A stretch of DNA of 64,000 nt, taken from IMG/VR virus record IMGVR_UViG_3300027708_000012, positions 62,001 to 126,000 of that record; one strand, 5' to 3'. Shown piece by piece: positions 9,301 through 39,765 of the stretch; the stretch's first letter is position 1, and every line of letters starts with the position of its first letter. The notes beneath the pieces were generated by a model. It ran no database searches. It saw only the letters and a program-made list of their open reading frames with translations, and was not told where the DNA came from. A program made the position numbers and the translations under genes.

Positions 9301-12300
9301 AGTTACCGTACCAGCTGTTGGCGTAGTACCTCCAAAAACTGTATATGTTATACTAGTAGTACTAACAATACTTGTAACTAATACGCTAGTAGGACTTCCA
9401 CCGTATAATGTTCCAGTACCAGTTGTTGCTGTTATTGGCATACCGACATAAAATCCAGTTGTTGAACTCATGTTGGTAATAGTGGCTGACCAGGGACCAG
9501 TTCCTGTAATTGAGCCAATTGTTCCAGTAGTGCTACCAATAACACTTGCAAGACTTGCTGAGCCAATTGTTCCACTATTAGTACTAGTAATATATGTTCC
9601 AGCTGTAATAGTTCCAGCACTAGTTAAAATCATACCAGGAGTAAATGATCCAGTAAGTGTTCCAGTAGCTGTCATATAGCCACCGCCTGCGCCAGTCGTA
9701 TTAGGATTAATGATTGCGGCGGTATTGCTTGCACTAGCATTTGTTGTCACAGTAATAGTTAAAGGTGCAAAACTTTCTTTAGCCATTAATGCAATTTTAC
9801 TTCCTGAATTGAAATCAGCAACAAAACCTGTTTGTCCTACACCTGCACCGCCAATTAGATTTAATCGCATACCTTTGTATGCATTAGTAATTCCAATATC
9901 AGTTGCCGCAATTGTTATTTGGTATGTATTACCAGTCTGTCCTGTATTTGTAATGGTAACATAACTAGATCCGTTTGTTAATAAACGAACTTCATAAGCA
10001 GCATTATCTCTAAATTCATTTGCAACAGCACTTACTCCATATCCAGTTGAACTATTAAACGAATATGTTGCTGTATTGTAAGCAGAACCTGCATTAGAAT
10101 ATTCTAAACGGTAAATTTTATTTGAATTATCTGTATATACGTTAGCAATCTGTGCTTGAAATGCTCTATTGTTTACGTTTGCAATAATTGGAGTTTCTGA
10201 AGCATCGTAACCTTCTGCTACTACACCAAATGTTCCATAAGAACTATTTCCATTAGTAGCACGAATTTTACCACCAGCTTCTGCTAGATATCCTGCTGTG
10301 TTATAGTATGCAAACACTGAAACTAATTCAGTTAAGGCATTAGATCCAGTGCACCAGCAACCAATACCATCACTTAGTACCTGTGTGAAATCGTTGGCAA
10401 CTATACTTCTGTTTCCGCCGTTGTGCAATGTTCCGTCAATTTTTAATCCAACACATGCAGTACCAAATGTAGTAACGTTTTGTACATAAGGCGATTTTCT
10501 AAAAATCCACACTGAAGAATCTGCTGGCCCGGTGCCTGGATCTAAACTTACATAAGCACCTGCTGTTGGTCTGTACGATCCAAATGCATTTGCAGATGTT
10601 AACGTTCCTGTTAAACCAGATAAAGTCATATTTCTGATGCCGGCGCCATTTCGTACATAGAACATGTTAGCTGTATTATAACTTGCAACTAATGATGTAC
10701 TACTAATTGACCAACCATTAATATTATTAACAGTATATGTTCCTGTTCCGCCAGCATAGAAGAAATAAACTGTAGTACTAACGCCTGAAGTTAATTCGTT
10801 GCTTAATTTTATTGTTGTGCCATTGATAGAAGTTACATATGTATTTGCTGGAATACCGCTGATAGCACCGCCGTTACCCGATACAAACATACCAACAGCA
10901 ATACCAGTATTGCTGGTTACGGTTAAGTTAAAACTTCCGCTTGAACCTGTTGACGCTGTATTCGCTGCCGCTGTACTACTTGCACCAGTTAGTTGTGCTG
11001 TTATTTGTAATGGTGCTGTAATTGTTGCAGAACCGCTTACAAACATTCCGCTTATAATATTACCAGTTGCTGTAAAAGTAGTACCAGTAATAGTAGCTGC
11101 TGGAGTTAAAGTTATATATGTTCCGGCAAGAGCATTTGCATAACTACTTGAGAGTGTTAAAGTCGTAGCAGTTAAAACAGCTCCTACAAAATATGTGCCA
11201 GCTGATACACCGCCACCGCCAGTGCCAGTAATAACAAATTTGTTACCAGTTTGCAAACCGGTTGTACTAGCAACTGTAAGTACACCGCCGCTACCAGTTG
11301 ATCCGTAAATACCAACTGCTGCAGCCGTAATATTTTGACTTGATAAAATTGATGTGATTGCTGATGCTGTAAGGGTATTACCGCTCACAGAACCAGTAAA
11401 TCCAGCCGAAGTGATTAGAGGTTCAACAACAACACCACGTAGTTCATCACCAACTAGTGCTGTATTTTCAGCTACGCTGATAGGAAGTACTTCTTGGTAT
11501 GTTCCATTTTTAATATTAATTGTGCTAGTAACACCTTGGTTTGCAGGAGGAATACTTGCTGTACTTTGAGCTGTTAATGCTGTTGTAATTATTCCAAATA
11601 ATGTAGTAATAGCGGAACTTGAACCAGTTTCAGCTGTATAGTTAGTATCAATTGCCTGACTAATAGCAGATCCTGCAATATTTCCACCGCTAGTATATGA
11701 TGCTGTATTTGTACTTGAAACAGTTACACTAGTTGCTGATAATGCTACTACTGTATATGTTGTATTATAGCTAGTAGGGACAACTGAAGTAACTGTTATA
11801 GTTTCACCTATAACAAATGGTGAACGAGTTTGCGATGCAAAACTAAACGTTACTTGGTTATTCAAACTAGTAATACCAGTAATTGCTAGCGTTGTTAATG
11901 CCGCAGATCCACCTGTTGTATTTTGATAAGTTGATGCTGGCGCACTATTAGCTATAATATTTTGTGAAATTGTAGCAAGACGACCTAACGATGCAATAAT
12001 AAATGGCATTGCGTTTGTTGTTGCTGTATTATAGAATAAATTAGATCCTTGTTGGAAATAAGAATATGCTGCAGCTACTGTTTGACTATTGCCGCCACGT
12101 GCCAGGTCGTATATGATTGCATCTATAACATATCCTGCATCACGCTGAGTTTTATACGGATCGTAAACTGACGAACCGCTAAATGGTGTGTTATTATTGG
12201 CTGCTTGATATGTCATCCAATTGTACATTTCAGCTACTAAGAAATTTTTGTTTTTTGTTAGTAGCGTTGTAGTATTTGTAAATGCTGTTCCAGCTAATAC

Positions 12301-14175
12301 TTGGGCACAAGCATATGCAATAGTTTTCCATGGGCGGTCTAATGTATTTCCATATGAAGGCAACGGTGCATCTACACCATTAGTTGCAGACACATAGAAC
12401 ACATTACTAACGACACCAAAATAATTCCAAGCAGGGATACCTGAAGGAGTTACTCCAAGTATTTGTCCTGATGATCCAATTGGCAATCTTGTTGGTCCTG
12501 ACGGGCCTTGATATATCATATCGCCCTGTGTGGTCATAACACTTGTAATTGCACCAGCTGCTAGTAAATTCCAATATGCTCCAACTGTGTCACTTGCTGG
12601 TGAATTTCCGCTAGATGCGGTATGTGCTTGTACACAAATAAAACTGCTATTGCCGTATGTAATAGCATCGCCTAGTACATATATTGTACTGGTCGCCCAA
12701 GTTGTTGAATAACCAGTATTAGTAACAGCACCAATCACGCCGCTTGTTTGTGCCGATACTGTTACAATGATATCATTTGCTGGACTAATTCCGCCAACAC
12801 TTGTTCCTAAAATTTTAATAGTATCGTTAGTAGCATAACCTGTACCACCTGCATTCTTTACAACAAGATAATAAGTGTTGCTTATAGTAACATTAAATGT
12901 AGCGTCTTGTCCAGTACCTACAACATTGGTTCCTGTAACTCCTGTGAATGTTTGAGAACTTGGATTCCAATAAATTCCACTATTGAGTCTAGACCAGTAT
13001 GTTGCATTGCCTGTACCTTGTACTGAAGTTGCGTTCGGTGCATCAAGTAATGCCGTATAAGTATAACCGTTTTGACGTACTACATCGCCTACTTTATAAC
13101 TTTGAGTTCCGTCAAATAATGCATCACCTCTGAAATTAAATCCAGTAGTAAACAACTGCCAATTTCCGCCTGATGCAAGTACATCGCTTTCAGGATTTAC
13201 ACTGGTGTTTAGTCTTTGCGCTATAAAAGCATAGCCACCGTATGTAACTAAATCACCAATTTGATAAACTACTCCGGTAGTCCAACTATTATAAAATTGC
13301 AGGCCGGCAATAAAAATTGACCAAGAATTTGAATCAAATGCTGTTTGAGAAGTATGATATGCTGTACAAATATAAACATCCGCACCGTATTTTACAACGT
13401 CATTAACTTTATAACGAACAGAACTAGGACTCCATGTTCCTAAATAATTAATACCCTTGTTAAAGTAGTCCCACTTGCCTTGATCGGCTTCTAAGCCCGA
13501 TGTTGCAGATGATGCACTGGTATGTCCAAGATTACATATGTAAGTTTGGCCGCCGTAAAGCACAACATCATTGATACGATATCTAGTAGATGTAGTCCAT
13601 CCAGCAGATATCCAATTAAGACCTTTAGTATAAACATCCCAATAACTTGATTGATCTTCAAGACCTAATGTTGTTGTTGCAGAACTAGTATGCCCTGTAT
13701 TACAATAGTATGATATACCGTTATATTTTACAACATCTCCAATTTTGTATCTAGTTGATGTATTCCATCCAGCGGATACCCAATTAAAACCAGTTGCATA
13801 CAAGTTCCATTTTCCAATATCTGCTTCTAAACCTGTTGTAGTTTCGGTGCCAGCTGTGCCCGTGCCAAGACTTGAACTACTAGTATGCCCTGTTGTACAA
13901 ATATATAATCTTCCGCCATACGCTACAAGATCATTAACTTTATAATAGGTACTAACGGCCCAATTGTTCATCCAAGTGGAGCCGTCTGACACTTGTTGCC
14001 AGTAGGAATTTACAGTTAAATCTGTATAAAAATTAGCGTTAGGTGTGTGACCAGTGACACACATATATGTTTTGCCGCCGTATCGAACGATATCGTCTTT
14101 AACATAAGTTGCTGTGGCACTAGACCATGCACCTTGCCATATAAAACGTAATCTTCCTAATTTAAATTCTGCCAT
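6358..14175 (-). CDS. Giant tail-fibre/virion structural protein (~2605 aa): CBM5/12-like repeats, beta-helix-like domain, beta-propeller-like repeats
   Basis: N-terminal repeats W...T.Y..GDVV.YGG..Y.C..GHTS; central SPYVQNVTTFGT..VANDFTQVLSDGIG; repeats W..V.YG.G.FVAIA. Start moved to MAEFKLGR (14175) because GGAG precedes it. Paralogue of 14224-19905. Confidence 0.75.
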   Translation of the reverse strand: MAEFKLGRLRFIWQGAWSSATATYVKDDIVRYGGKTYMCVTGHTPNANFYTDLTVNSYWQQVSDGSTWMNNWAVSTYYKVNDLVAYGGRLYICTTGHTSSSSLGTGTAGTETTTGLEADIGKWNLYATGFNWVSAGWNTSTRYKIGDVVKYNGISYYCNTGHTSSATTTLGLEDQSSYWDVYTKGLNWISAGWTTSTRYRINDVVLYGGQTYICNLGHTSASSATSGLEADQGKWDYFNKGINYLGTWSPSSVRYKVNDVVKYGADVYICTAYHTSQTAFDSNSWSIFIAGLQFYNSWTTGVVYQIGDLVTYGGYAFIAQRLNTSVNPESDVLASGGNWQLFTTGFNFRGDALFDGTQSYKVGDVVRQNGYTYTALLDAPNATSVQGTGNATYWSRLNSGIYWNPSSQTFTGVTGTNVVGTGQDATFNVTISNTYYLVVKNAGGTGYATNDTIKILGTSVGGISPANDIIVTVSAQTSGVIGAVTNTGYSTTWATSTIYVLGDAITYGNSSFICVQAHTASSGNSPASDTVGAYWNLLAAGAITSVMTTQGDMIYQGPSGPTRLPIGSSGQILGVTPSGIPAWNYFGVVSNVFYVSATNGVDAPLPSYGNTLDRPWKTIAYACAQVLAGTAFTNTTTLLTKNKNFLVAEMYNWMTYQAANNNTPFSGSSVYDPYKTQRDAGYVIDAIIYDLARGGNSQTVAAAYSYFQQGSNLFYNTATTNAMPFIIASLGRLATISQNIIANSAPASTYQNTTGGSAALTTLAITGITSLNNQVTFSFASQTRSPFVIGETITVTSVVPTSYNTTYTVVALSATSVTVSSTNTASYTSGGNIAGSAISQAIDTNYTAETGSSSAITTLFGIITTALTAQSTASIPPANQGVTSTINIKNGTYQEVLPISVAENTALVGDELRGVVVEPLITSAGFTGSVSGNTLTASAITSILSSQNITAAAVGIYGSTGSGGVLTVASTTGLQTGNKFVITGTGGGGVSAGTYFVGAVLTATTLTLSSSYANALAGTYITLTPAATITGTTFTATGNIISGMFVSGSATITAPLQITAQLTGASSTAAANTASTGSSGSFNLTVTSNTGIAVGMFVSGNGGAISGIPANTYVTSINGTTIKLSNELTSGVSTTVYFFYAGGTGTYTVNNINGWSISSTSLVASYNTANMFYVRNGAGIRNMTLSGLTGTLTSANAFGSYRPTAGAYVSLDPGTGPADSSVWIFRKSPYVQNVTTFGTACVGLKIDGTLHNGGNRSIVANDFTQVLSDGIGCWCTGSNALTELVSVFAYYNTAGYLAEAGGKIRATNGNSSYGTFGVVAEGYDASETPIIANVNNRAFQAQIANVYTDNSNKIYRLEYSNAGSAYNTATYSFNSSTGYGVSAVANEFRDNAAYEVRLLTNGSSYVTITNTGQTGNTYQITIAATDIGITNAYKGMRLNLIGGAGVGQTGFVADFNSGSKIALMAKESFAPLTITVTTNASASNTAAIINPNTTGAGGGYMTATGTLTGSFTPGMILTSAGTITAGTYITSTNSGTIGSASLASVIGSTTGTIGSITGTGPWSATITNMSSTTGFYVGMPITATTGTGTLYGGSPTSVLVTSIVSTTSITYTVFGGTTPTAGTVTNVSSILLSAGATSTGITPYALLLGGAITAGTYIVAQISATGATALATATFTGTSGTTSITLTSFTVGSISNVVIGQFIAPISGMLANTYVTAVNYLTGIITISNTLVGNVSGSTSVYTAGGLGTYGINQTATGTPTTSLSYSVSASQTRTSAAISATQNTLTVGSNVSVYNGMPMYVSATVGTNLLPATLYYAMAVVPNSNLFSVGTSSVATSAIIITSSSPSPVSVYAAGWDHVVLGTPIVANLDVTTQYIIEPRLTFSSPSFTPSSSTQISGTWIDCVYGDDVVTYSNISSTSSGAGTLATFNVVKTGVSYAVTQSASGGGYVIGEVLVIAGTSLGGSASNAINIVVTNIGVSGSITNFTFTGTGSGGRYIAIANSGTANQYSTNGTSWTSGGALSASGAWTSIAYGAGVFVAIGAGTSSTTTSTGTSWTLGGALQAGSWSAICYGNGVFMAVASGSTAASYSSNGSSWAATGALPASTSWSGVAYGNGTYVAIAAGGTQAAYSITGTTWVTATLPTTAYWSSVAFGRGIFVAIATGSNASAYSLDGITWVASPAGLPATLQWTKVRYGQGLFFAVAANSTTVATSEDGINWTSRALLTGTNWQGIAFGNPTSTPLWVAITAGTTTANSIVAGATTQARAVASAGSISSVRIIEPGSGYATTPVMTITDPNATIAATWTVRTGVGALANPTFASRGSLYVSASATVSGNGYSDSFQTGAYVNISGLYTTPISGANVVFSGNSTVYKLVSVSNVTSSGGGLTPNNAYFNINPALTVANAPTHNTTTTMRIKYSQVRLTGHDFLNIGTGNFSNTNYPGTPLIAADSTKQTIANGGGRVFFTSTDQDGNFNVGNLFNVVQSTGSATLNASAFSLAGLTSLTLGTTSLGGYNATITSFSSDPYFTANSDNVVPTQKAIRAYISSQIGGGGSNLNVNTLTAGVIYVSGNTITTTTGVYINVPSKMNFTGGIDGMPLAFNFLLR
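10460..10557. repeat. 98-bp exact direct repeat, copy 1 (copy 2 at 16982-17079)
   Basis: gtaccaaatgtagtaacg...tctaaacttacataagc is identical in both fibre genes by direct comparison. Confidence 0.9.
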
Positions 14176-14204
14176 TGTAAGCTCCAAAAACTATCAAGTT
14201 ATTA

Positions 14205-14223: not shown

Positions 14224-17200
14224 TTATGTAAAATCAAATCCTGATTTTAAAAACATTGTCATTGCAGGCATATTTCCGTTAATGCCTTTTGTTATTAATA
14301 CTTTTTTAGCCATTTTTACCGATCCGCCAGCTGTATTGTAAATTCGTTGATTTCCAATTGCTGTAACACCTGCTGTTAATAATGCGGTAAATGCATTTGA
14401 TCCACCGTTGGCAATATTTCTGGACAGATATGCCTTAATTGCTTTTTGGGTTGGAACAACTACATCGGAGTTTTGTAAGAAATACGCATCAGTTGAAAAA
14501 GAATTTACCGTTATGGTTGGGGATCCTAACAAGGTTAAACTTGTGATACCGCCAATATTAACAACACTTGCTGCAAGTGTAACTATTCCCGATGCTTGCT
14601 GTACAGCAAATAATCCACCTACGTTAAAGTTTCCGTCTTGATTTGTACTTGTATAAAATACTCGTCCGGTATTGTTTTCAACAGTTTGGAATGTTTCGTT
14701 CGCTGTTCTTACATCCACATTTGGATAGTTTGTACTAGAGAAGTTTCCAGTTCCAATAAGTAGAAAGTCGTGTCCTGTTAATCGAACTTGACTATATTTT
14801 TGTCGTATAGTTACACCTTGTCCGTGTATAGGGCTTATACTCCTATCAATATCTGGTGTTACCTGCAAAGTAGCAACACCGCCTACCAAAGATGTATAGT
14901 TTAAAACTATTTTATAAACTGTAGATACTCCAGTAATAACCAGGTTAGATCCAACAGCTGGTAACGATGCTAAATTATTCAAAGTAAGGTAACTAGATAT
15001 TTGATAACTATCTGCAAAACCATCACCAGTTAGTGTACATTTTGTAGTTGACGTTTGATATCCGTTACCCCTATTAGTAAATGATGGGTTACCAAGTACT
15101 CCTGTAGCTGTTCTACATAAAGTAGTTGCCGCTGTTCCACTACTTAAGGCTATATTTGGATCTGTTATAGTTGCAGTAGGAGTCGAACTATAGCTTGATC
15201 CTGGTTCCCACATTCTAATAGAACTAATTTTACCAGATGCTACTACAGTTCTTCCACGAGCTGTTGCTCCTGCTGTAATAATTGATGTTAAACTAGTACT
15301 TTGCCCTGCACCGCCTGTGATAGCTACCCATCTTGGAGTTACTAAGCCGCCAATAGTTGGGTTGCCAAAAGCAATTCCTACCCAGTTTGATACTTGAGGT
15401 AATAATCGAGTGATCCAATTTAAACCGTCTTGACTGGTTGCTCCAATTGTTGAAGATAATGCTACAGCAAAAAATAAACCTTGAGCATACGAAACTTTGG
15501 ACCAGTTTTGTGTACTAGGCAATCCGTTACTAGCAATCCAAGTAATACCATCAAAAGAATATGCAGATACTGTTCCTCCACTGGCAATTGCTACAAATCT
15601 TCCGTTGCCGTAAGAAACACTAGTCCAAACAGCTGATACTGGCATAGTTGTCAGCGTCCATGTTCCGCCATCGTTAGTACTATAGGCGGCTGTTGTAGTT
15701 GATACAGACTGTCCGGCTACCGCAACCCATGTAGCTGGTCCAGATCCGTAAACTACTCCGCACCATGTAGTGGTACTAGGTAAACTACCATTTTGTATCC
15801 AAACAGTTCCAGTTGTAGTATATGCTGTATAAGTTGCACCTATAGCTATAAATTTATTATTACCGTAAGCAACTGATGACCATAAATCTGATATTGGTAA
15901 TGTAGATTGTATCCATACTCCTGGAGTCGTTGAATATGCAACTGTAGTTGCGCCTGCGGCTACTGTTACATAATAAGTTGTTCCGCTAATTTTTCCTGCT
16001 GCTAAAGAAGTGTATACTGCAGCATTAATGAATGTACTAGTCCACGATGTTCCGTTGGTAGAATATAAGGAATTACCAGATTGGTCTACTGAAACATAAT
16101 ATCCGTTACTATAGACAATTGAACTCCACGATGATGCTATTGGCAACACACCTGATGTAGAAGTATATGCAGGATCACTAAAAACTACTCTAGCTTCAAC
16201 TGAATATACTGTTGTTGAATCCAATGTAGATGCTATAGGAGTTCCTGGCAAAATATTATCCCAACCTGCTAAACTAGTAGAATCTGCGTATATTGTTGCT
16301 GTTTTTGTGCTCGTATTATATGATTGGATATATCCGTATTGTCCAACTCCAGTTCCGCTAGTAATAAAAACACGCAGACCTAAATAATTAGCTGGCAAAT
16401 TCTGATCATTACTGGCAAATATAATTGTAGAACTGGTGCCGCCTTGAGCATTATTACCTGCTGTTAAGTAACCATTACCACCTGCCGCTATAGAAGTTCC
16501 GGTAATACGTGTTTCAAATATTGCATTATCTCTAAATTCGTCAGCAATAACTGAAACTCCAGTACCTGCGCCTGTAAAACTATAGCTGGCTGTTGTGTAA
16601 TTTTGTCCAAAATTACTAAATTCTAATGCTAAAATTTTATTTTGAGCCTGACCTGCAAATACTTCAGCTACTTGTGCTTGTGTTGCCCTATTATTAACAA
16701 CAGGAGTTAGTGGAATTTCTGTGTTATCGTATCCTTCGGCTATAGCACCATACGTACCATACGAACAATTTCCGTTAGTAGCACGAATACGTCCGCCAGC
16801 ATCTGCCAAGTAACCAACAGCATTATAGTATGTAAATACAGACACTAGTTCTGTTAATGCTCCAGACCCAGTACACCAGCAACCAATACCATCACTTAGT
16901 ACTTGTGTAAAATCGTTGGCTACAATTGACTTATTTCCGCCATTATGTAATGTTCCGTCAATTTTCATTCCGACGCATGCGGTACCAAATGTAGTAACGT
17001 TTTGTACATAAGGCGATTTTCTAAAAATCCACACTGAAGAATCTGCTGGCCCGGTGCCTGGATCTAAACTTACATAAGCGCCGGCATTTGGTCTGCTAGT
17101 TCTATAAATGTTTGGAGATTGTAATACTCCAACAATTCCAGATAACGTCATATTTCTGATACCAGAACCGTTGCGTACATAGAACATATTAGCTGTTGAA

Positions 17201-19905
17201 TATCCGCCTACAATAAGGATACTATTAAAATTAGCAGCATTACTAACAGTATATATTCCAGCACCGCCTGGAGTACCCGAAACTTGCGCGGTAATTTGTG
17301 TTGGCAATGTACAAACAGGACTACTAATGTACATACCAATTGAAATTGGATTGCTGCCACTAACCATAGAAGTCACAGTTAGTATTGTACCAGATCCGCC
17401 ACTTCCGTTATTAATAGATCCATTAAAGCTAGAAGTTATCGGAGATGGCTGAACTATTGTAGTTCTTAATTCGTCTCCAACTAGTGCTGTGTTTTCTGGT
17501 ACACTAATTGGAAGTATTTCTTGATAAGTGCCTGTTTTAATAAAAATTGTAGCAGTCAGTCCTTGATTTGCTGGAGGAATGTTTGTGGTAGTTTGATTTG
17601 TTAACGCATATATTATAATATTTGTTAAATTTGTAACCAAAGAAGCTGCACTTGTTTCTGCAGTGTAGCTAAGATTAATAGTTTGATTAATTGCGGACCC
17701 TACAACCGATGGTGTACCGCCTATAAACGAATCAACTACTGTACTTAAAAAAGTTACACTACTGGTTGTTACAGTAGAAACAGTATATGTTCCATTATAA
17801 GTAGATGGGATAACACCGCTTACTGTTATAGTTTCGCCTATTGAAAACGGTTCAGTAATTTGCGTAGCAAACGATATTACTACTTGCACTCCAGATGATG
17901 TTATATTTGTAATTGCCAATGACGTTGAAGAAACATTATTAGCTGATTGATAGCTTGTTGCTGGAGCAGTATTATTAACAGCATTTAATAACAATGTCTG
18001 GAGATAATTTAGTGCCGCTATAAAATAAGGCATTTCACTTGCCACAGTTGTATTAATAAATGTATTAGTTCCAGGAATAAAATATGCAGATGCTGCCGCT
18101 ACTGTCTGACTATTTCCGCCTCGACCCATGTCGTAAACAAGTGCGTCTACAATATATTCGGCATCGCGTTGCGTTTTTTGAGGATCGTATGACGAACTAG
18201 TTGTAAACGGACTTAAATTATTTTTATTTTGATAAATCATCCAGTTATACATTTCTGCCACAGCCCATGCTTTATTGGCTTTCAGCAAATAATTGGCATT
18301 TGTATACAATGTACCGGCGGCAACTTGGGCGCAAGCATATGCAATAGTTTTCCAAGGAGAATTTATAGTAGTACCGTTAGTAAGACTGTCAGTTCCTGTG
18401 GTGTTTGATACGTAGTATACACCTGGTACAGCACCAAAGTTAGACCATGAAGGATCTGTTCCTGTTGATTTTAAAACATTACCGTATGTGCCAATCAATA
18501 AAGCCGAAGCTGGGTTAGATGATGCATATACTGGTAAATCTCCAACAGTTAGTAATCCATCAAACTCGTCACCTTGTACTAGTGTTTTCCACCATGTACT
18601 AGCTGAACCGGTATTACTCGGAGTGCTAGCAACTGATGACACGTGTCTGAGTATGCATTCAAAACTTGTTCCTTTATAAGAAACAACATCTCCAACGACA
18701 TATGTTGTAGTCGATGCCCAGATATTTTTCCAATATCTTCCTGGTACTACTACGGTCCAATATGTTCCGTTATCAGTTTCTATGCCAGCTGTTGTATCTT
18801 GTATTGCAACATATAGATATCCGTCTCTTCTAACTAGACTACCAATTTTATACGGTGTTGTATTATTCCATTCACCTTGTACGCTGTACTGTTGTGTTAG
18901 TAATAACCAATTGGCACTACTAGTGCTTGGTACGTTTCCTGTATTATTTGATATTTTGCTTGTATAAGTATAACCACCATAACGTACTACATCGCCTAAT
19001 TGATAGGTAGTTCCTATGACCCATGCATTTACAAATTCTTGGCCTGGAGTATATAGTGTCCAGTTTGAAGGATTAAATGTAGATGTTGATACATGATATG
19101 TACTGCAAATCCAAGCATTGGCACCATATGTAATTACGTCATTTGCTTTATAACGATAACTTGATCCGTTGTAAGTTGACAAATATTGAATACCGTTGTG
19201 TACTACTGTCCACTTGCTTAAATCATTTTCAAGACCTAAATATGTAGGTGTTGTGTAGGTAGCACTGGTGTGCCCGGTAGTACAACGATATAGTATACCG
19301 CCGTAACGTACTAAATCGTTAGCCTTATATGCTGTTGTTGGAGTCCAGTCTGTTTTCCAATCATCTGAAACACTAAATGTTGCCCATGATGATAAATTTA
19401 ATTCTAAGCCGCCTGATGGAGGTAATGCTGTTGCAGCACTGATATGTGCCGTTGTACAAATGTACAAGGTACCTCCATAGCGTACTACATCTTTGACTTT
19501 GTATTGTGTACCAACAGTCCAAACAGATTTCCAAGATTCTGTAATTGCATACGCTGTCCATGAACTTTGATTAGCTTCAAGACCGCCTGCAGATGCTAGC
19601 GAAGCTGAGCTTGCACTAGTATGATTTGTTGAACATATATAAACTATTCCACCGTAATTTACTATATCACCTGTTGAGTATATGGTGTTAGTGGTCCATG
19701 TATTTTTCCATGTATATCCATCAAACCATAGACTCCAATATGCACTGGCAAGGTCTGTATTAAAATTAGAAGTTGCAGTATTACCAATTAGACAAACATA
19801 ACTTTTTCCGCCGTACTGTACAATATCATCTTTAGTATAAGATGTAGATGCAACCCATGGGCCTTTCCATGTAAATCTAATTCTGCTTATTTGAAATTCA
19901 GTCAT
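14224..19905 (-). CDS. Giant tail-fibre/virion structural protein (1893 aa), paralogue of 6358-14175
   Basis: Same domain order: CBM-like repeats, SPYVQNVTTFGT block, propeller-like repeats, and the KYSQVRLTGHDFL.IGTGNFS.TNYP C-terminal block. Confidence 0.75.
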   Translation of the reverse strand: MTEFQISRIRFTWKGPWVASTSYTKDDIVQYGGKSYVCLIGNTATSNFNTDLASAYWSLWFDGYTWKNTWTTNTIYSTGDIVNYGGIVYICSTNHTSASSASLASAGGLEANQSSWTAYAITESWKSVWTVGTQYKVKDVVRYGGTLYICTTAHISAATALPPSGGLELNLSSWATFSVSDDWKTDWTPTTAYKANDLVRYGGILYRCTTGHTSATYTTPTYLGLENDLSKWTVVHNGIQYLSTYNGSSYRYKANDVITYGANAWICSTYHVSTSTFNPSNWTLYTPGQEFVNAWVIGTTYQLGDVVRYGGYTYTSKISNNTGNVPSTSSANWLLLTQQYSVQGEWNNTTPYKIGSLVRRDGYLYVAIQDTTAGIETDNGTYWTVVVPGRYWKNIWASTTTYVVGDVVSYKGTSFECILRHVSSVASTPSNTGSASTWWKTLVQGDEFDGLLTVGDLPVYASSNPASALLIGTYGNVLKSTGTDPSWSNFGAVPGVYYVSNTTGTDSLTNGTTINSPWKTIAYACAQVAAGTLYTNANYLLKANKAWAVAEMYNWMIYQNKNNLSPFTTSSSYDPQKTQRDAEYIVDALVYDMGRGGNSQTVAAASAYFIPGTNTFINTTVASEMPYFIAALNYLQTLLLNAVNNTAPATSYQSANNVSSTSLAITNITSSGVQVVISFATQITEPFSIGETITVSGVIPSTYNGTYTVSTVTTSSVTFLSTVVDSFIGGTPSVVGSAINQTINLSYTAETSAASLVTNLTNIIIYALTNQTTTNIPPANQGLTATIFIKTGTYQEILPISVPENTALVGDELRTTIVQPSPITSSFNGSINNGSGGSGTILTVTSMVSGSNPISIGMYISSPVCTLPTQITAQVSGTPGGAGIYTVSNAANFNSILIVGGYSTANMFYVRNGSGIRNMTLSGIVGVLQSPNIYRTSRPNAGAYVSLDPGTGPADSSVWIFRKSPYVQNVTTFGTACVGMKIDGTLHNGGNKSIVANDFTQVLSDGIGCWCTGSGALTELVSVFTYYNAVGYLADAGGRIRATNGNCSYGTYGAIAEGYDNTEIPLTPVVNNRATQAQVAEVFAGQAQNKILALEFSNFGQNYTTASYSFTGAGTGVSVIADEFRDNAIFETRITGTSIAAGGNGYLTAGNNAQGGTSSTIIFASNDQNLPANYLGLRVFITSGTGVGQYGYIQSYNTSTKTATIYADSTSLAGWDNILPGTPIASTLDSTTVYSVEARVVFSDPAYTSTSGVLPIASSWSSIVYSNGYYVSVDQSGNSLYSTNGTSWTSTFINAAVYTSLAAGKISGTTYYVTVAAGATTVAYSTTPGVWIQSTLPISDLWSSVAYGNNKFIAIGATYTAYTTTGTVWIQNGSLPSTTTWCGVVYGSGPATWVAVAGQSVSTTTAAYSTNDGGTWTLTTMPVSAVWTSVSYGNGRFVAIASGGTVSAYSFDGITWIASNGLPSTQNWSKVSYAQGLFFAVALSSTIGATSQDGLNWITRLLPQVSNWVGIAFGNPTIGGLVTPRWVAITGGAGQSTSLTSIITAGATARGRTVVASGKISSIRMWEPGSSYSSTPTATITDPNIALSSGTAATTLCRTATGVLGNPSFTNRGNGYQTSTTKCTLTGDGFADSYQISSYLTLNNLASLPAVGSNLVITGVSTVYKIVLNYTSLVGGVATLQVTPDIDRSISPIHGQGVTIRQKYSQVRLTGHDFLLIGTGNFSSTNYPNVDVRTANETFQTVENNTGRVFYTSTNQDGNFNVGGLFAVQQASGIVTLAASVVNIGGITSLTLLGSPTITVNSFSTDAYFLQNSDVVVPTQKAIKAYLSRNIANGGSNAFTALLTAGVTAIGNQRIYNTAGGSVKMAKKVLITKGINGNMPAMTMFLKSGFDFT
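16982..17079. repeat. 98-bp exact direct repeat, copy 2
   Basis: Identical to 10460-10557. Confidence 0.9.
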
Positions 19906-32857: not shown

Positions 32858-35800
32858 TTAAAATGCTCTACCAGTTGATTTTGCCGCTGTCTTTGCTGTT
32901 TTGCTACTAGCATCGGCTGTAGTGGCACTGTGATTAATTAATTCTACCATATGTCTATTTAACATGATTAGCTGGTCGTTCAAATCTTTTAAGGTAGCCT
33001 CAGCTGTTTTTGCTTTGGGTGCTTCTTTAGGTGCTTCTTTAGGTGCTTCTTTAGTTGCCGCAGCTTTTGCTTGTTCTGATTCTCCAGGTTTACCTGTTGT
33101 TTTTGTTTCTTCTTTCTTAGCGGCCGCTTCGGTAGTTTTAGGAGCACTAGCAGTTGCAGCAGGTTTTGGTGCACCTGTTGTTTTTGTTTCTTCTTTCTTT
33201 GCGGCCGCTTCAGTAGTTTTAGGAGCACTAGCAGTTGCAGCAGGTTTTGGTGCACCTTCTGTTTTATTTTTTGCTGTGAGTTTGGCAAATTCTTCATCAC
33301 TTACTTTGTTAACAATTTTAGGATTAAACATATCGCCAAGCATGCCACCTTTGCCACCGATAATATCTCCAAAACTTCCAGTTAATTTGTTAGCTTGCTC
33401 GGTGACATATCCTACATCTCCTGATTTTTTTCCTTTAGTCAAATCTCCTACCTTACCTGCTATGTCTGCACTTTTAGGAATCATTCCACCAAGCATTTTA
33501 TTCATCTGTGATTTTGCAGATTCTGCTTGAGCAATAACTGCTTTAGCTTCTGGACTATTAGGATCTACAATTTTTCCGTTAATTTTTACGGTTGTATTTG
33601 CATTTTCAAGTGCGTCTGCCTGTGCTGTTTTTGTAACTTCTGATATTTTTGCAACTGTTTCTTCTTGCATACTTACTTGTTCGTTAGCTGCTTGTTGCTT
33701 TAATTCTTTTTCTCTTGTAGCACTATATTCGTTAAGATTCTCCATGACATCTTGCATTTCTCTTTTAGATGCCGCTTGCTTTTCAAACATTGCTTTATTA
33801 AGTGTTTCGTTTTCAATTGCAGCAAGTTCTTCGGTAGTTGCTTGACGATCACCAATTTCTGCTTTCATTTTAATAATTCGTTCACCGATCATCTGTGCTG
33901 TTTCAGCATCTTCTTTGGCTCCTTTTTCCATAGCTTTTGCATGGAACGATCTGTTTTCTTCACTGTATCCTTTATAGTCGTCAATTATTTTTTGCTGACT
34001 TTCTGTAAATTGTGAATGATATTGTTCTTGGGCTTTTCCTGCAACTGTTGCAGATTCTATACTTTTTAATCCCATATCTTCAGATACTTTTCGCGCAGCT
34101 TCCGATGCCGATATCTTAATTGTTGAAGATGCTTGCTCGTTGTCTGTTATTTTTTTCAAATTATTTGCGCTGTCATTGGAAAAACTTTGTATATTATCGT
34201 TCATATCTATATAAAAGTCATCCATACTTGCACTAATAGGCAATATTGCAGCTATAGCATCATCACTAAGACCTTTAACATTGTATCCTACAACGCTTCT
34301 TGCAAGCTCAGCGGCTTTAAATATTTCATCTTTCTTAGCTGCCTGATCAGCTAATTCAGCAGAAGTTTTTTTCTTAGTGTCTCCAAAGAAATTATCTTCA
34401 TCTTTTGTTTTTGATTTAAACGCTTCTAATTGTTTTGCATTTCCAGAAAATGATATTTTAGTTTGTTCTTCTACTACTTTTTTAGTTTCTTCAATTGCAG
34501 AAGCTTTTTTAGTAGTTTCCCAACTAATGCCAGCTTCAATTTGTTTTTGTAAAGGCTCCATTATAGCCTTATATTTGTCACCTATTGCTTTACCTTCGTC
34601 TCCAGTCCGCATTTCATAAGAAACTTTACTTCCACCTAACTTGCTACCGTCACCCATTTGAGCTTTTAATTTTTCTCTAAGAGCAGCTCGCTCAGCTTGC
34701 ATCTGTTCTCGAACAGCTGCCAATTCTTTTTCAGCAGCTTTGCTACTGTCATTTTGTACTTGTTTGGTTTCAGTTGAGCCGCCACCTGACATGCTACTAA
34801 TAGAAGTGGATACTGATTTGCTAATTTCAGAAAAATTTACTCCTCCTGGAGCTTTACTTCCAGCACTTAGTTGTTTGCCCATAGCTTTAGTAGCATCAGG
34901 ATTTAATACAGTTTCACCTTTGTGTATTTTGACAATAGCATCTTCAGGTTCTACAGCACTTCCAGTTTCTGCTAGTGTTCCGCCTGCACGTTTTTTAGTT
35001 GGCTCGTAGTCTTTAGGCAAACTACTAGCACCGCCTGTAGTTTTAGTAGGACCTTCTTTTCCTCCCGAAACTATTTCGTTTAAACCTTTAGCAATTTTTG
35101 AAGGAGCTTTTTCAGCTTGCTCCATTGTAGTAGCACCGCCAGAAACTTTCTTCATAGCTGCGTTCATAGCATCTATATAAGCAGGCGTGGTAGCTAATTT
35201 TTTGTTTACATCTTCAAAATTATGAGAAAGGCCTCCGGCTGCTATTGCAGCTGCTTTGTTCATTGCATTTAAATCTTGAGCAACTTTTTGTCCTTCGTCT
35301 GCTTCAGGCGTTGCTTTTGCTTTGCCGTTTTCATCTACTTTCAAACCAGCTTGAGTAGCTTGCACAGCTTCTCGTTGATCTTTAATTGCTTTTACATAGT
35401 CGCCGCCGTTTTTGTTTGCTTCACTTTGTACACTCATCATGGCTTTATTGCCCATGACAAGATTAGCCGCAGCTTGTTGTTGTTCTGCTGTTCCGCTCTT
35501 GACTAACCGTTTAAATTCTTCATCAGCCATACGACGTTGAACAGCCGCTTGTGCTTCATCCATTTGAGCTTGCGCTACTTTTTTCTGCTCGTCAGTTTTG
35601 GCATTCAACATAAGTTCAGTAGCTGCTTGATATTTGTTAGCTGCTTCTGGTCCCATCGCCTGCAACATGGCCAAACCTTCTTTAGTTTGCACTCCACCTG
35701 TGGCAATTTCTGTTGTCAGGCTCATAAATCCAGGGCCTAGTTTTTGCACTTGCTGTTGGACTTTTTCGTAATTTTCTCGTTGCTTTTCGTCCATTTGCAT

Positions 35801-36541
35801 CATGGCTAACTGTGCTAAAGGTTTTTTCTCTTCAGCTTTAATGCTGTCCATGATAGCTTGACGACTTTGGCCAGTAATTTTTGCCGTTTCATCTAAACTC
35901 ATTGCTAAATCAATAGCACTCTTGGCGATAGCAGCTTGTCCAGCTTTATCATTAGCATTTCTTTTGGCATCATTCATTGTAGCCATTGCTGTGATTTCAG
36001 CTTGCTCTTGCGCACTGATACCCATCTTGTTCAACTGATCACCAGTTTCTACAATTTGTTTCTGAACTTTACTAAAATTTAACGCACTTTGCTGTGCTGT
36101 GATACCTAATCCGCCAATACTTCCATCAGCTCGTTTGATTACTTCAGAGAATTGTTGCGTAGTTAGTCCTGCATCTCCTGCCATTCTAACAAACAATCCA
36201 ATATTATTGCCGCCAATGCCTAACTCGGCACTAGCTTTATCCATATTAGTTTTTTGTTGTAATAACGCACCGCCAAATAAATCTAAACCTTTACCCAGTG
36301 CATTCAATCCAACAGCTTGAGCACCTTTAGATAACGCTGCTAATCCAGCTGTGGCTGCATCAGTTCCGCTGTTTAATCTATTAAATCCAAAATATAAACT
36401 GGCCGCGCCATCGGATAGATCTTTTAAACCTTTGTTTGCGCCAGCAGCATTTAGACCAGCTTGTTGCGGTTGAGCTGCACTATTGCCCGAGCCTTGTGCT
36501 AACAGTTTTTGTGCGGTTTCTTCAGATAATGGTGTTGCCAT
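32858..36541 (-). CDS. Tape-measure-like / baseplate hub protein (gp29-like)
   Basis: 1227 aa, Ala/Gln/Lys-rich and helical-looking, with RAGGT...E...VKIHKGETVL, a motif common in tape measures. Adjacent to the gp26/gp51-like chaperones. Confidence 0.65.
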   Translation of the reverse strand: MATPLSEETAQKLLAQGSGNSAAQPQQAGLNAAGANKGLKDLSDGAASLYFGFNRLNSGTDAATAGLAALSKGAQAVGLNALGKGLDLFGGALLQQKTNMDKASAELGIGGNNIGLFVRMAGDAGLTTQQFSEVIKRADGSIGGLGITAQQSALNFSKVQKQIVETGDQLNKMGISAQEQAEITAMATMNDAKRNANDKAGQAAIAKSAIDLAMSLDETAKITGQSRQAIMDSIKAEEKKPLAQLAMMQMDEKQRENYEKVQQQVQKLGPGFMSLTTEIATGGVQTKEGLAMLQAMGPEAANKYQAATELMLNAKTDEQKKVAQAQMDEAQAAVQRRMADEEFKRLVKSGTAEQQQAAANLVMGNKAMMSVQSEANKNGGDYVKAIKDQREAVQATQAGLKVDENGKAKATPEADEGQKVAQDLNAMNKAAAIAAGGLSHNFEDVNKKLATTPAYIDAMNAAMKKVSGGATTMEQAEKAPSKIAKGLNEIVSGGKEGPTKTTGGASSLPKDYEPTKKRAGGTLAETGSAVEPEDAIVKIHKGETVLNPDATKAMGKQLSAGSKAPGGVNFSEISKSVSTSISSMSGGGSTETKQVQNDSSKAAEKELAAVREQMQAERAALREKLKAQMGDGSKLGGSKVSYEMRTGDEGKAIGDKYKAIMEPLQKQIEAGISWETTKKASAIEETKKVVEEQTKISFSGNAKQLEAFKSKTKDEDNFFGDTKKKTSAELADQAAKKDEIFKAAELARSVVGYNVKGLSDDAIAAILPISASMDDFYIDMNDNIQSFSNDSANNLKKITDNEQASSTIKISASEAARKVSEDMGLKSIESATVAGKAQEQYHSQFTESQQKIIDDYKGYSEENRSFHAKAMEKGAKEDAETAQMIGERIIKMKAEIGDRQATTEELAAIENETLNKAMFEKQAASKREMQDVMENLNEYSATREKELKQQAANEQVSMQEETVAKISEVTKTAQADALENANTTVKINGKIVDPNSPEAKAVIAQAESAKSQMNKMLGGMIPKSADIAGKVGDLTKGKKSGDVGYVTEQANKLTGSFGDIIGGKGGMLGDMFNPKIVNKVSDEEFAKLTAKNKTEGAPKPAATASAPKTTEAAAKKEETKTTGAPKPAATASAPKTTEAAAKKEETKTTGKPGESEQAKAAATKEAPKEAPKEAPKAKTAEATLKDLNDQLIMLNRHMVELINHSATTADASSKTAKTAAKSTGRAF
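33017..33257. repeat. In-frame tandem repeats: 2 x 81 bp (33092-33257) and 3 x 12 bp (33017-33053)
   Basis: They encode GAPKPAATASAPKTTEAAAKKEETKTT twice and KEAP three times; the DNA copies are near-identical. Confidence 0.9.
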
Positions 36542-36565: not shown

Positions 36566-36591
36566 TATAAATACTACATAAGATATTTATC
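36566..36591. promoter_or_regulatory. Face-to-face pair of late promoters serving divergent genes
   Basis: TATAAATA on + (36566-36573) for gp26 and GATAAATA on - (36584-36591) for the tape-measure-like gene. Confidence 0.7.
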
Positions 36592-36602
36592 TGGAGATAA
36601 AC

Positions 36603-37424
36603 ATGGTACAGAACCCTTTACAGCAATTTTTTAGACAACCTAAAATTTACATCAAATTACCAAGTCAGGGTGTGTACTGTCAGCCCGGAACTATACAAGG
36701 AGACGTGGGTAACATGCCTGTGTATAGTTTAACAGGCATGGATGAAATTATTTTAAAAACTCCTGATGCTTTGCTATCCGGCGAAAGTTCAGTTAAAGTT
36801 ATAGAAAGCTGTGTTCCAGGAATTAAAAACGGCTGGGACATGAGCATTTTAGACAGTCAGGTTATATTTGCTGCCATGCGCATTGCTACATTTGGTAATG
36901 AAATGGCTGTTACTAACACTTGTAGCAGTTGCAAAACTGAAAACGATTATGATTTAGATCTAAGTAAAATTATTGAACATTTTAGTTCAGTGGTCTACGA
37001 CAGCAAAATAGTTTTAAAAGAATTAATTATAAAATTACAACCATTAAACTATCGTCAAAGCACAGAGTTTAATTTGAAGAATTTTAGACTACAACAAAAG
37101 ATTCGACAAACAGAAACAATAGAAGATCAAGCTGAGCAACAGCAACTGATCAATAAACTGTTTGAAGAACTAAGTGTAATTCAAAATGAATTGTACAAAG
37201 CATGTGTTGAATCTGTAGAAGTCAATAATAAAGTTGTTACCGAACGTTCGTTTATTAACGAATGGCTAGACAACTGCGATAAAGAAGTATACGACAGTAT
37301 CAAGAAACATATTGAAGATAGCAGAGACAAATGGAAAGCACCTACATATCCTGTTAAATGTGACACTTGCGGTACTGAAGCTAAACTTTTTGTGGAATTA
37401 GATCAAAGTAATTTTTTCGACTAA
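36603..37424 (+). CDS. gp26: Baseplate hub assembly protein (gp26-like)
   Basis: NPLQQFFRQPKIYIKLPSQG, DEIILKTPDALL.G, AMRIATFG, two CxxC pairs, ends in NFFD. GGAG SD. Confidence 0.8.
   Translation: MVQNPLQQFFRQPKIYIKLPSQGVYCQPGTIQGDVGNMPVYSLTGMDEIILKTPDALLSGESSVKVIESCVPGIKNGWDMSILDSQVIFAAMRIATFGNEMAVTNTCSSCKTENDYDLDLSKIIEHFSSVVYDSKIVLKELIIKLQPLNYRQSTEFNLKNFRLQQKIRQTETIEDQAEQQQLINKLFEELSVIQNELYKACVESVEVNNKVVTERSFINEWLDNCDKEVYDSIKKHIEDSRDKWKAPTYPVKCDTCGTEAKLFVELDQSNFFD
37412..37418 (+). other. Candidate -1 programmed ribosomal frameshift site (T TTT TTC)
   Basis: X XXY YYZ heptamer in the gp26 frame. The -1 frame opens exactly at 37412 and continues into the gp51-like ORF. Confidence 0.6.
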
Positions 37425-37651
37425 GCCTAATCGGACTTAGTGGTCAAGAAATCCACGAAAGTTTGGTTAGGCTTGAAAAAGAAACAAAGATTTTTAAAGA
37501 AGATTTGTTTAGAATCTCGTGGTACATGCGTGGCGGAGTTACTGTAAACGATCTAATGGAGCGATACGGTTTCGAAGATCGTCAGATCATGTACGAGATT
37601 ATTAAAGAAAACATCGAAGCAACTAAAGCTAGCCAAATGCCTTTGCTTTAA
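37412..37651 (+). CDS. gp51-like baseplate hub assembly chaperone domain (probably expressed as a gp26 frameshift extension)
   Basis: LFRISWYMRGGVT..DLM...EDR.IM.EIIKEN resembles short gp51-like proteins. The only start upstream of this core is a TTG at 37463 without an SD. Confidence 0.6.
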   Translation, partial: FFRLSLIGLSGQEIHESLVRLEKETKIFKEDLFRISWYMRGGVTVNDLMERYGFEDRQIMYEIIKENIEATKASQMPLL

Positions 37652-39327: not shown

Positions 39328-39765
39328 TTAACCGTTTAATTGTTTGCCTTTAATGTGGGAACCGTGTACCCGAACCTGTATGTGCCCGTTATAATAGTCG
39401 TCAGATTCTAAAACTCTACGACTAAATTGCTCTCTTGCCTCTATGTAACTGCATTCTGATTTGGATTTACAGTAATAAAGTATTTCTCTACGGAAGTTTT
39501 CGGTACCTAACTGCGTAACATCTTTGCTAAGTTCAGGGCTAGAACCATAATATTCTTGCCAGTCGCTATCAATTTTGCTACGGATTTTCTTTTTTTTCTT
39601 TGTGCCGTTCTTTAACTTTAAAGTTTTGTAGGTCGTTTTACTAAATTTTGCTAATTTTTTGCCTATGTACATACGCCCGGTAATTGTATTTGTTATATTA
39701 TAAACAAACCCAACACAATCTTCGGGCAATTCTGTGATTAATTGATTTTCGTAGTACCAAGACAT
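39328..39765 (-). CDS. GIY-YIG endonuclease (stand-alone catalytic domain, DenA/Seg-like)
   Basis: GFVYNITN...GRMYIGKK, YYGSS, F.REIL, E, and YYN motifs; 145 aa. Confidence 0.85.
   Translation of the reverse strand: MSWYYENQLITELPEDCVGFVYNITNTITGRMYIGKKLAKFSKTTYKTLKLKNGTKKKKKIRSKIDSDWQEYYGSSPELSKDVTQLGTENFRREILYYCKSKSECSYIEAREQFSRRVLESDDYYNGHIQVRVHGSHIKGKQLNG

Follow-up and report, generated by a model that had tools for sequence, protein, structure and literature searches.

A freshwater jumbo phage and all of the relatives we examined appear to make a short and a long version of a T4 gp26/gp51-type tail-hub assembly chaperone from one gene, by a programmed −1 ribosomal frameshift, whereas T4 and some other phages achieve this with two separate genes. 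The sequence analyzed (hereafter the window) is a 64,000-nucleotide stretch of IMG/VR virus record IMGVR_UViG_3300027708_000012 (positions 62,001 to 126,000 of that record). The phage belongs to the RaK2/PA5oct/Atu_ph07 supergroup of jumbo phages with T4-like core genes, and is not T4-like in the narrow sense, although an initial sequence-only reading called it T4-like. A blastn search against cultured phages gave no match, and the phage is known only from freshwater metagenomes. We consider the frameshift likely on the basis of sequence anatomy, conservation, coding signal and RNA covariation, although there is no direct protein or RNA evidence that the fusion exists.

The gp26-like gene (36603–37424, plus strand) encodes a 273-aa product with two CxxC zinc-ribbon knuckles, whose cysteines are invariant in our alignments, ending in LDQSNFFD. 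The product matches Pfam PF12322 (T4_baseplate) at 4.5e-14, with 53.1 bits against a gathering cut-off of 24.5 (residues 61–272 on profile positions 43–218 of 219), and phrog_150 (baseplate hub) at 1.3e-18. The 3′ end of the gene (37404–37424) reads CAA AGT AAT TTT TTC GAC TAA, in which the slippery heptamer T_TTT_TTC occupies 37412–37418 (plus strand) in X_XXY_YYZ phase with the ORF. The −1 frame has a TAA at 37409–37411 and is then open from 37412 to the TAA at 37649–37651, reading FFRLSLIGLSGQEIHESLVRLEKE... for 79 codons (extension 37412–37651, plus strand, including the stop). Joined after Asn270, the extension gives a conceptual fusion of 270 + 79 = 349 aa (...SNFFRLSLIGL...MPLL), as the sequence-only reading had proposed. 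A T4 late-promoter-like motif, TATAAATA (36566–36573, plus strand), lies 30 nt upstream of the gp26-like ATG and is one of only 3 copies in the window, against 10.7 expected by chance.

This arrangement is more than chance. Of 49 ORFs of 100 aa or more in the window, it is the only one with an in-phase slippery heptamer in its last 20 codons followed by at least 50 open −1 codons. Elsewhere the window avoids this encoding of Phe-Phe, with T_TTT_TTY at 2 of 26 FF sites although TTT makes up 82% of Phe codons. All 32 distinct homologous genes examined (19–97% identity, including RaK2, 121Q, PA5oct, Atu_ph07, CBB, and XacN1, and a locus with 55% G+C) keep T_TTT_TTY in phase, 30 with TTTTTTC and 2 with TTTTTTT, and the T run is never disrupted by a synonymous change. 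The XacN1 query found nothing in IMG/VR. The heptamer alone is nevertheless weak evidence in A+T-rich genomes. Codon usage alone gives AAT TTT TTY a chance of about 0.55 per lineage, and the short paralogs of lineages with two genes (see below) still carry T_TTT_TTC or T_TTT_TTA in 3 of 4 cases without a useful −1 ORF. An assembly or sequencing error, or a decaying gene, is extremely unlikely. Homopolymer runs are typical sites of indel errors and in-frame versions do exist in other lineages, but the same break is present in 32 distinct genes from independently sequenced isolates and metagenomes, five IMG/VR contigs are identical here, and DNA contigs from three other metagenome runs cross the T run without an indel. 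Further, the in-frame versions have a different junction (a single F, no T run) and, in all four contigs examined, come with a second, short paralog.

The −1 ORF is 72–82 codons long in all of these homologs, while the 0-frame tail after FF varies from 1 to 13 residues. The peptide read after the shift site (FFRxxLIxxSxxEI) is conserved from the first codon across the variable 0-frame stop, and entropy by codon position in the −1 frame is 0.71/0.37/1.17, a pattern that holds for codons 3–14. These observations bear on the possibility that the downstream ORF is a separate small gene, expressed from its own start or by termination-reinitiation coupling. GenBank records annotate it this way in Phosso, Atu_ph07, A4, CBB, XacN1, 121Q, 7t3, and others; Phosso and Atu_ph07 have an ATGA stop/start overlap, and Phosso, Atu_ph07, and 121Q have an ATG 3–4 codons after the heptamer, which could allow coupled reinitiation there. 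However, the annotated starts fall at arbitrary, non-homologous positions (extension-profile positions 1 to 39), several lineages have no ATG, GTG, or TTG before codon 38 although residues 1–37 are conserved and show coding periodicity, and PA5oct has none in 75 codons. In the window the only start found for the downstream ORF is TTG at 37463, which is CTG in a relative with a 97% identical extension (L008). We consider a separate gene very unlikely.

Homologs that carry the extension in frame provide further support. While Pfam and PHROG searches with the extension alone gave nothing usable, a profile of the extension finds 402 cluster representatives, and 21 of the top 150 have the domain in frame at the C-terminus of 261–351 aa proteins (20 of them 319–351 aa), with the junction DLDxSxxFRxKLI. 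In all four contigs examined, such a gene follows a second, short PF12322 gene ending SFFND or similar. Both the short and the long paralog map to a single place in every cultured jumbo genome, and the in-frame protein aligns to Atu_ph07 in two pieces across the shift site. A predicted structure of an in-frame homolog is confident (pLDDT 89.6, pTM 0.84), with the extension as a helical module continuous with the domain, and its fold matches BFVD entries named baseplate hub assembly protein at E down to 4e-17. A search of this model against PDB and Swiss-Prot AFDB gave no match with E < 0.05 or TM > 0.2, and hence no structural link to known chaperones.

The sequence-only reading called the downstream ORF gp51-like, but it is the whole fusion (PF12322 domain plus a C-terminal tail) that appears to correspond to gp51, while the 0-frame product corresponds to gp26. 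PF12322 covers T4 gp26 residues 1–206 of 208 and gp51 residues 1–201 of 249. The extension aligns weakly but in the right place with the gp51 tail: single-sequence hhalign comparisons with T4 gp51 or gp26 were not significant (E 0.13 and 0.15), whereas family profiles gave P = 1.3e-3, and 5e-5 to 5e-4 with larger profiles, at a modest hhalign probability of 18–66%. Position and motifs (LLxxP[DE]EI, ER) agree, and the conceptual fusion aligns end to end with gp51 across the junction.

Downstream of the heptamer, the dominant and conserved structure in the window is a stem-loop (37422–37475, plus strand) with a 17-bp stem pairing 37422–37438 with 37459–37475 (−29 kcal/mol, z = −6.1, with 0 of 200 dinucleotide shuffles folding as well; −27.7 to −29 kcal/mol and z −6.1 to −7.1 across analyses). 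The full stem starts only 3 nt after the heptamer, whereas its conserved core, pairing 37425–37437 with 37460–37472, starts 6 nt after it. In the window’s clade, 72.9% of alignment cells are paired, against 22–45% in slid controls, the covariation score is 0.317 against at most 0.166, and RNAalifold independently predicts the same helix. The smaller hairpin at 37420–37441 noted in the sequence-only reading can form, but with 57.5% of cells paired it is weaker than the long stem, and we rejected it as the main conserved element. PA5oct, XacN1, and Atu_ph07 have their own hairpins, but the RaK2/121Q group and the homologous loci L016/L017 and L026/L027 show no convincing downstream structure.

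The same fusion could be made by transcriptional slippage, since RNA polymerase adding one U in the T6 run would give the identical protein (...NFFR...). Two lineages (XacN1 and CM1) have T7, and several clades lack an obvious stimulatory hairpin. However, a run of six is probably short for efficient polymerase slippage, the run is held at exactly six, followed by C and in X_XXY_YYZ phase, in 30 of 32 lineages rather than lengthening, and a covarying stem-loop 3–6 nt downstream is the hallmark of ribosomal −1 frameshifting. We consider slippage by the polymerase unlikely, albeit without data on RNA indels, as the only metatranscriptome run holds a 180-nt contig inside the gp26-like gene (36910–37089).

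We infer that most ribosomes read AAU UUU UUC GAC UAA and release the 273-aa short form, while a fraction slip back one base on U_UUU_UUC, with both Phe-tRNAs re-pairing on UUU UUU, probably helped by the stem-loop. These ribosomes would continue in the −1 frame for 77 more codons to make a 349-aa long form that shares the first 272 residues, with a defined junction peptide (tryptic LFVELDQSNFFR here; ...FFR or ...FFQR in cultured relatives). This phage and the cultured RaK2/121Q/CBB/PA5oct/Atu_ph07/XacN1 jumbo phages appear to encode the pair as one gene plus a frameshift, whereas T4 and a clade of uncultured phages encode it as two paralogous genes. No examined GenBank record annotates the slippage, the extension being either unannotated or called a separate hypothetical protein, and we found no paper describing it, although our literature coverage was incomplete. 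This reading corrects the annotation of about 90 or more phage genomes and several hundred metagenomic clusters.

The divergent neighbor (32858–36541, minus strand), a 1227-aa Ala/Lys/Glu-rich protein lying between the portal gene and the gp26-like gene, is a tape-measure candidate. Neither it nor a 401-aa neighbor gave a usable Pfam or PHROG hit, and BLASTP showed no significant similarity of the candidate to the RaK2 or PA5oct counterparts. Its identity rests on synteny, composition, and the nearest ESM-Atlas feature clusters, all tape-measure proteins (score 0.92), which is a lead only. The order of portal, large virion protein and divergent gp26-like gene is also seen in RaK2, PA5oct, CBB, and Phosso; in A4 a small ORF lies between the large protein and the gp26-like gene, and the 121Q locus did not reach the portal. 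The counterpart is annotated as tape measure in RaK2 and pEa_SNUABM_50. Both gp26 and gp51 of T4 are listed as hub assembly chaperones, and gp51 is absent from the particle (PMC3004832). As indirect evidence only, in PA5oct the neighbor carries an ESI-MS/MS virion note and the gp26-like gene does not, and the CBB virion table lists CBB_251 but not CBB_250 or CBB_249 (PMC5259590). By analogy with T4 and with lambda G/GT, the pair probably acts in hub and tape-measure assembly with the divergently transcribed candidate; the G/GT analogy and the tape-measure identity, both raised in the sequence-only reading, are reasonable but remain inference.

Programmed frameshifting in tail assembly chaperone genes is a classic conserved feature of long-tailed phages, but T4-type phages have seemed to lack it. 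More tentatively, and with the balance of probability slightly against it, the PF12322 short/long pair may be the missing counterpart of lambda G/GT for T4-like and jumbo contractile tails, a tape-measure and hub chaperone system whose two-product logic is universal. It would be encoded either by a conserved −1 frameshift (jumbo phages) or by duplicated genes (T4 genes 26 and 51, tandem pairs in uncultured phages), one architecture having evolved from the other, and this would give T4 gp26 and gp51, whose roles have been unclear for decades, a concrete and testable function.

Among known systems, E. coli dnaX tau/gamma and IS-element sites represent bacterial-type −1 frameshifting on a heptamer with a downstream stem-loop as stimulator, as proposed here, although in dnaX the shift gives the shorter product and uses an upstream Shine-Dalgarno-like stimulator, which was not seen in our alignment. 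In the lambda gpG/gpGT tail assembly chaperones and the conserved frameshift of long-tailed phages (Xu, Hendrix and Duda 2004, cited in PMC9024508), one gene next to the tape-measure gene gives, as inferred here, a short and a C-terminally extended long protein by a −1 shift on an X_XXY_YYZ heptamer near its 3′ end, the role proposed here is likewise assembly chaperone, and phages that lack the frameshift keep the short/long logic in another form. However, the protein family and fold are unrelated (no Pfam family other than PF12322 at E ≤ 0.1, and no PDB fold match), the protein is larger (273/349 aa) and has zinc ribbons, the heptamer is T_TTT_TTC rather than G_GGA_AAG, and the gene is divergent from the tape-measure candidate, whereas G/GT lie upstream of H on the same strand. 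In the tandem PF12322 pairs of uncultured phages (L043, L044, L047, and L049), the long gene carries the same extension (E 1e-16 to 1e-17 to the profile) with the same junction motif FRxKLI, and the short gene ends at the same FF motif, but both products are encoded in the 0 frame and the short paralog has lost the zinc-ribbon cysteines. T4 gp26 and gp51 belong to the same family, gp26 being the bare domain ending EFFELL and gp51 the domain plus a 48-aa tail that begins just after the equivalent VF, and the gp26-like gene is a divergent neighbor of the tape-measure candidate, as gene 26 is of the tape-measure operon in T4. T4 uses two genes at about 19% identity and no frameshift, its FF being encoded by the non-slippery G TTC TTT, and the window protein is longer at the N-terminus and in a central insert, with an extension about 25 residues longer than the gp51 tail.

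The region at 37404-37424 reads CAA AGT AAT TTT TTC GAC TAA and closes an ORF (36603-37424) encoding 273 aa, which matches Pfam PF12322 (T4_baseplate, the family of T4 gp26 and gp51) at 4.5e-14 and phrog_150, "baseplate hub," at 1.3e-18. The heptamer T_TTT_TTC lies at 37412-37418 in X_XXY_YYZ phase. The -1 frame has a stop at 37409-37411 and is then open to 37651, reading FFRLSLIGLSGQEIHESL... for 79 codons, such that a shift on the heptamer would give a 349-aa protein. The window is part of a 345-kb IMG/VR contig from a freshwater metagenome and has no DNA match among cultured phages. Its gp26-like protein is 26-29% identical to those of the jumbo phages Phosso, Atu_ph07, PA5oct, RaK2, A4/121Q, CBB, GAP32, and XacN1. 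In the Yersinia phage fHe-Yen9-04 (g243c; positions 1189-2064 of the retrieved locus), the gp26-like gene is annotated in RefSeq as "Lead, cadmium, zinc and mercury transporting ATPase," evidently a mis-annotation, probably caused by the cysteine motifs.

Neighboring genes in the window are a T4-type portal, prohead protease, major capsid protein, gp46/gp47-like SbcCD, and a GIY-YIG endonuclease. The latter, a homing-endonuclease-like ORF at 39328-39765 (- strand), lies between the tail-hub region and the gp46/47-like genes; its best PHROG is labeled "NAD synthetase," but homing-endonuclease families also hit. Two very large ORFs (2609 and 1893 aa) lie downstream of the head gene block at 6358-14187 (-) and 14224-19905 (-). 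The sequence TATAAATA at 36566-36573 (+), the T4 late-promoter consensus, lies 30 nt upstream of the gp26-like ATG. This motif occurs only 3 times in the window against 10.7 expected, which suggests that it is avoided except where it functions.

Among 49 ORFs of 100 aa or more in the window, only the gp26-like gene has an in-phase slippery heptamer in its last 20 codons followed by at least 50 open codons in the -1 frame. The window otherwise avoids this encoding: TTT accounts for 82% of Phe codons, yet 14 of 26 Phe-Phe pairs are TTC TTT and only 2 are T_TTT_TTY, which looks like genome-wide avoidance of slippery U runs. Five IMG/VR contigs are identical at the site and DNA contigs from three further runs cross it without an indel; it is therefore not an assembly artifact.

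To test the prediction of the sequence-only reading, which had proposed a -1 frameshift joining the gp26-like gene to the downstream ORF, we collected the homologous locus from 26 IMG/VR contigs at 48-100% identity, further IMG/VR relatives of RaK2, PA5oct, and Atu_ph07, twelve cultured phages, and three more metagenomic or MAG contigs. In one of these MAGs (GCA_012033295.1; positions 1-757 of the retrieved locus), the T4-type portal gene next to a frameshift-type gp26-like gene carries a weak intein-splicing domain hit, and its product is 1083 aa. The collection makes 32 distinct genes, and the same picture holds in every one. T_TTT_TTC is in phase near the 3' end, with the Xanthomonadaceae phages XacN1 and CM1 having T_TTT_TTT instead; the codon before the heptamer always ends in T, although it encodes Asn, His, Ser, Arg, or Ala; and a -1 ORF of 72-82 codons starts at the heptamer. 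An error or a pseudogene is excluded by this conservation. By contrast, the 0-frame tail after Phe-Phe varies from 1 to 13 residues with little conservation (D, E, A, GKA, ERA, RES, DLSFSS, and FSSQTQKK-type tails). One locus has 55% G+C and still reads AGT TTT TTC. T4 gp26 has the same C-terminal ..EFFELL motif, but it is encoded G TTC TTT and gene 25 follows it. The Phe-Phe motif is thus a protein-level feature of the family, while the slippery encoding is specific to genes that have a -1 extension, although exceptions among two-gene lineages are described below.

The -1 peptides align from their first residue, with the consensus FFRxxLIxxSxxEIxxxLxxLxxExKxFKxELFRISWYMRGG..., and the conserved stretch spans the 0-frame stop. 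Column entropy by codon position in the -1 frame is 0.71/0.37/1.17, and for codons 3-14, directly after the shift site, it is 0.86/0.57/1.29. In many lineages the first ATG/GTG/TTG in the -1 ORF is codon 38, and PA5oct has none in 75 codons. The window's TTG at 37463 is CTG in a relative whose extension is 97% identical. GenBank annotators either leave the extension unannotated (RaK2, PA5oct) or call a "hypothetical protein" from whatever internal ATG is available, and no record examined shows a joined CDS. A separately initiated small protein is contradicted by these missing starts and by the in-frame homologues described next, and we consider it very unlikely.

A profile of the extension searched against 1.84 billion cluster representatives found 402 proteins at E <= 1e-3 and 113 at E <= 1e-10. 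Most are small ORFs of 41-119 aa with starts at arbitrary profile positions, many of which begin in the -1 frame upstream and read ..KFFR.... However, 21 of the top 150 are proteins of 261-351 aa (20 of them 319-351 aa) with the extension in frame at the C-terminus. Their junction is ..DLDxSxxFRxKLI.., with a single Phe and no T run. In all four contigs we looked up (L043, L044, L047, and L049), such a long gene directly follows a second PF12322 gene of 294-329 aa (L043 820-1704, L044 51-1040, L047 7097-7999, and L049 411-1295), which ends ..SFFND*, ..NFFTDNK*, or ..NFLPDNQ* and has no extension. Contig L047 also has a SegE-like GIY-YIG gene beside its PF12322 pair. Both paralogues, used as tblastn queries, hit one and the same place in each complete genome of the cultured jumbo phages, and the in-frame protein aligns to Atu_ph07 in two pieces that together cover 97% of it, crossing the frameshift site. 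So one gene plus a frameshift in one set of phages corresponds to two genes in another. The short paralogue of the two-gene lineages has lost the CxxC zinc-ribbon cysteines, yet in three of four cases it still keeps T_TTT_TTC or T_TTT_TTA at the homologous FF/FL site without a useful -1 ORF, possibly a relic of a frameshifting ancestor. Given this, and given that A+T-rich codon usage alone makes AAT TTT TTY fairly likely, the heptamer by itself is not the decisive evidence; the -1 ORF anatomy and the fusions are.

PF12322 covers T4 gp26 almost entirely (residues 1-206 of 208). In gp51 it covers residues 1-201 of 249, which leaves a 48-aa tail beginning right after the VF that corresponds to the FF. 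A newer Pfam model, PF28602, is attached to gp51 homologues. The extension profile aligns to the gp51 family at residues 221-253 with P = 1.3e-3, and a 68-sequence profile gives P = 5e-5 to 5e-4, with probability 32-66%. An alignment of conceptual fusions matches gp51 from residue 30 to 248, running through the junction (FFRxxLIxxPxEI against vFKLLLNPDEIF). This is positionally consistent but statistically modest, so we regard the homology of the tail as probable rather than shown. Functionally, the T4 tail review lists gp26 and gp51 both as "hub assembly chaperone" and states that gp51 is required but absent from the particle (PMC3004832).

In the window, the 60 nt after the heptamer fold into a predicted 17-bp stem pairing 37422-37438 with 37459-37475, with an energy of -27.7 to -29 kcal/mol and z = -6.1 to -7.1; 0 of 200 dinucleotide shuffles fold as well. 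On an ungapped alignment of 15 relatives, 72.9% of cells in this stem are paired, against 22-45% when the partner is slid by 1-3 columns, 22 cells have changes on both sides, against 5-14 in the controls, and the covariation score is 0.317, against at most 0.166. RNAalifold predicts the same helix without being told. The conserved core starts 6 nt after the heptamer, whereas the local hairpin at 37420-37441 proposed in the sequence-only reading pairs in only 57.5% of cells. When the heptamer is included in the fold (37412-37482), the U run itself pairs with the downstream GAAAAAGA (37474-37481), which extends the stem to the slippery site. PA5oct, XacN1, and Atu_ph07 have different hairpins 6-19 nt downstream, and the RaK2/121Q group and some members of the window's clade have none that stands out. 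Any stimulator is therefore lineage-specific, and a stimulator may not always be required. Transcriptional slippage on the T6 run would give the same protein and cannot be excluded without RNA data, but we consider it unlikely, since the fixed length of six, the fixed phase, and the covarying downstream stem favor the ribosome.

An in-frame long form, modeled with 19 homologues, folds with mean pLDDT 89.6 and pTM 0.84. In this model the extension forms four helices (266-275, 279-308, 313-318, and 321-341) continuous with the zinc-ribbon domain. The model matches many viral predicted structures named baseplate hub (assembly) protein, down to E = 4e-17, but nothing in the PDB or Swiss-Prot AFDB. 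There is thus no structural link to known tail assembly chaperones.

The divergent neighboring ORF, encoding 1227 aa, has no Pfam or PHROG hit and no BLAST similarity to the RaK2 or PA5oct counterparts. It does occupy the conserved slot between the portal gene and the gp26-like gene, which in RaK2 and pEa_SNUABM_50 holds a protein annotated as tape measure; in PA5oct and CBB the protein was found in virions by MS. Its nearest ESM-Atlas feature clusters are all tape-measure proteins, with score 0.92, which is a lead only. Within the C-terminal part of this tape-measure candidate, at about 33090-33260 (- strand), is a perfect tandem duplication of a 27-aa unit (APKPAATASAPKTTEAAAKKEETKTTG, twice) that may mark a recent change in length. 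The gp26-like gene carries no MS note in PA5oct, and CBB_250 and CBB_249 are not in the CBB virion table. This fits a non-structural chaperone, but the evidence is weak.

The best explanation for these observations is a programmed -1 ribosomal frameshift that makes a gp26-like short form and a gp51-like long form, which probably act as a chaperone pair for hub and tape-measure assembly. We consider the recoding and the correspondence likely, although they are inferred from sequence comparison without direct protein or RNA evidence, and place less confidence in the specific G/GT-like function. No description of a frameshift in gp26-like genes was found in the full-text literature searched, and no examined record annotates one. 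The kind of event, a short/long tail-assembly pair made by -1 frameshifting, is well known from lambda G/GT. What appears new is the protein family in which it occurs, the phage group that carries it, and the proposed equivalence with T4 genes 26 and 51.
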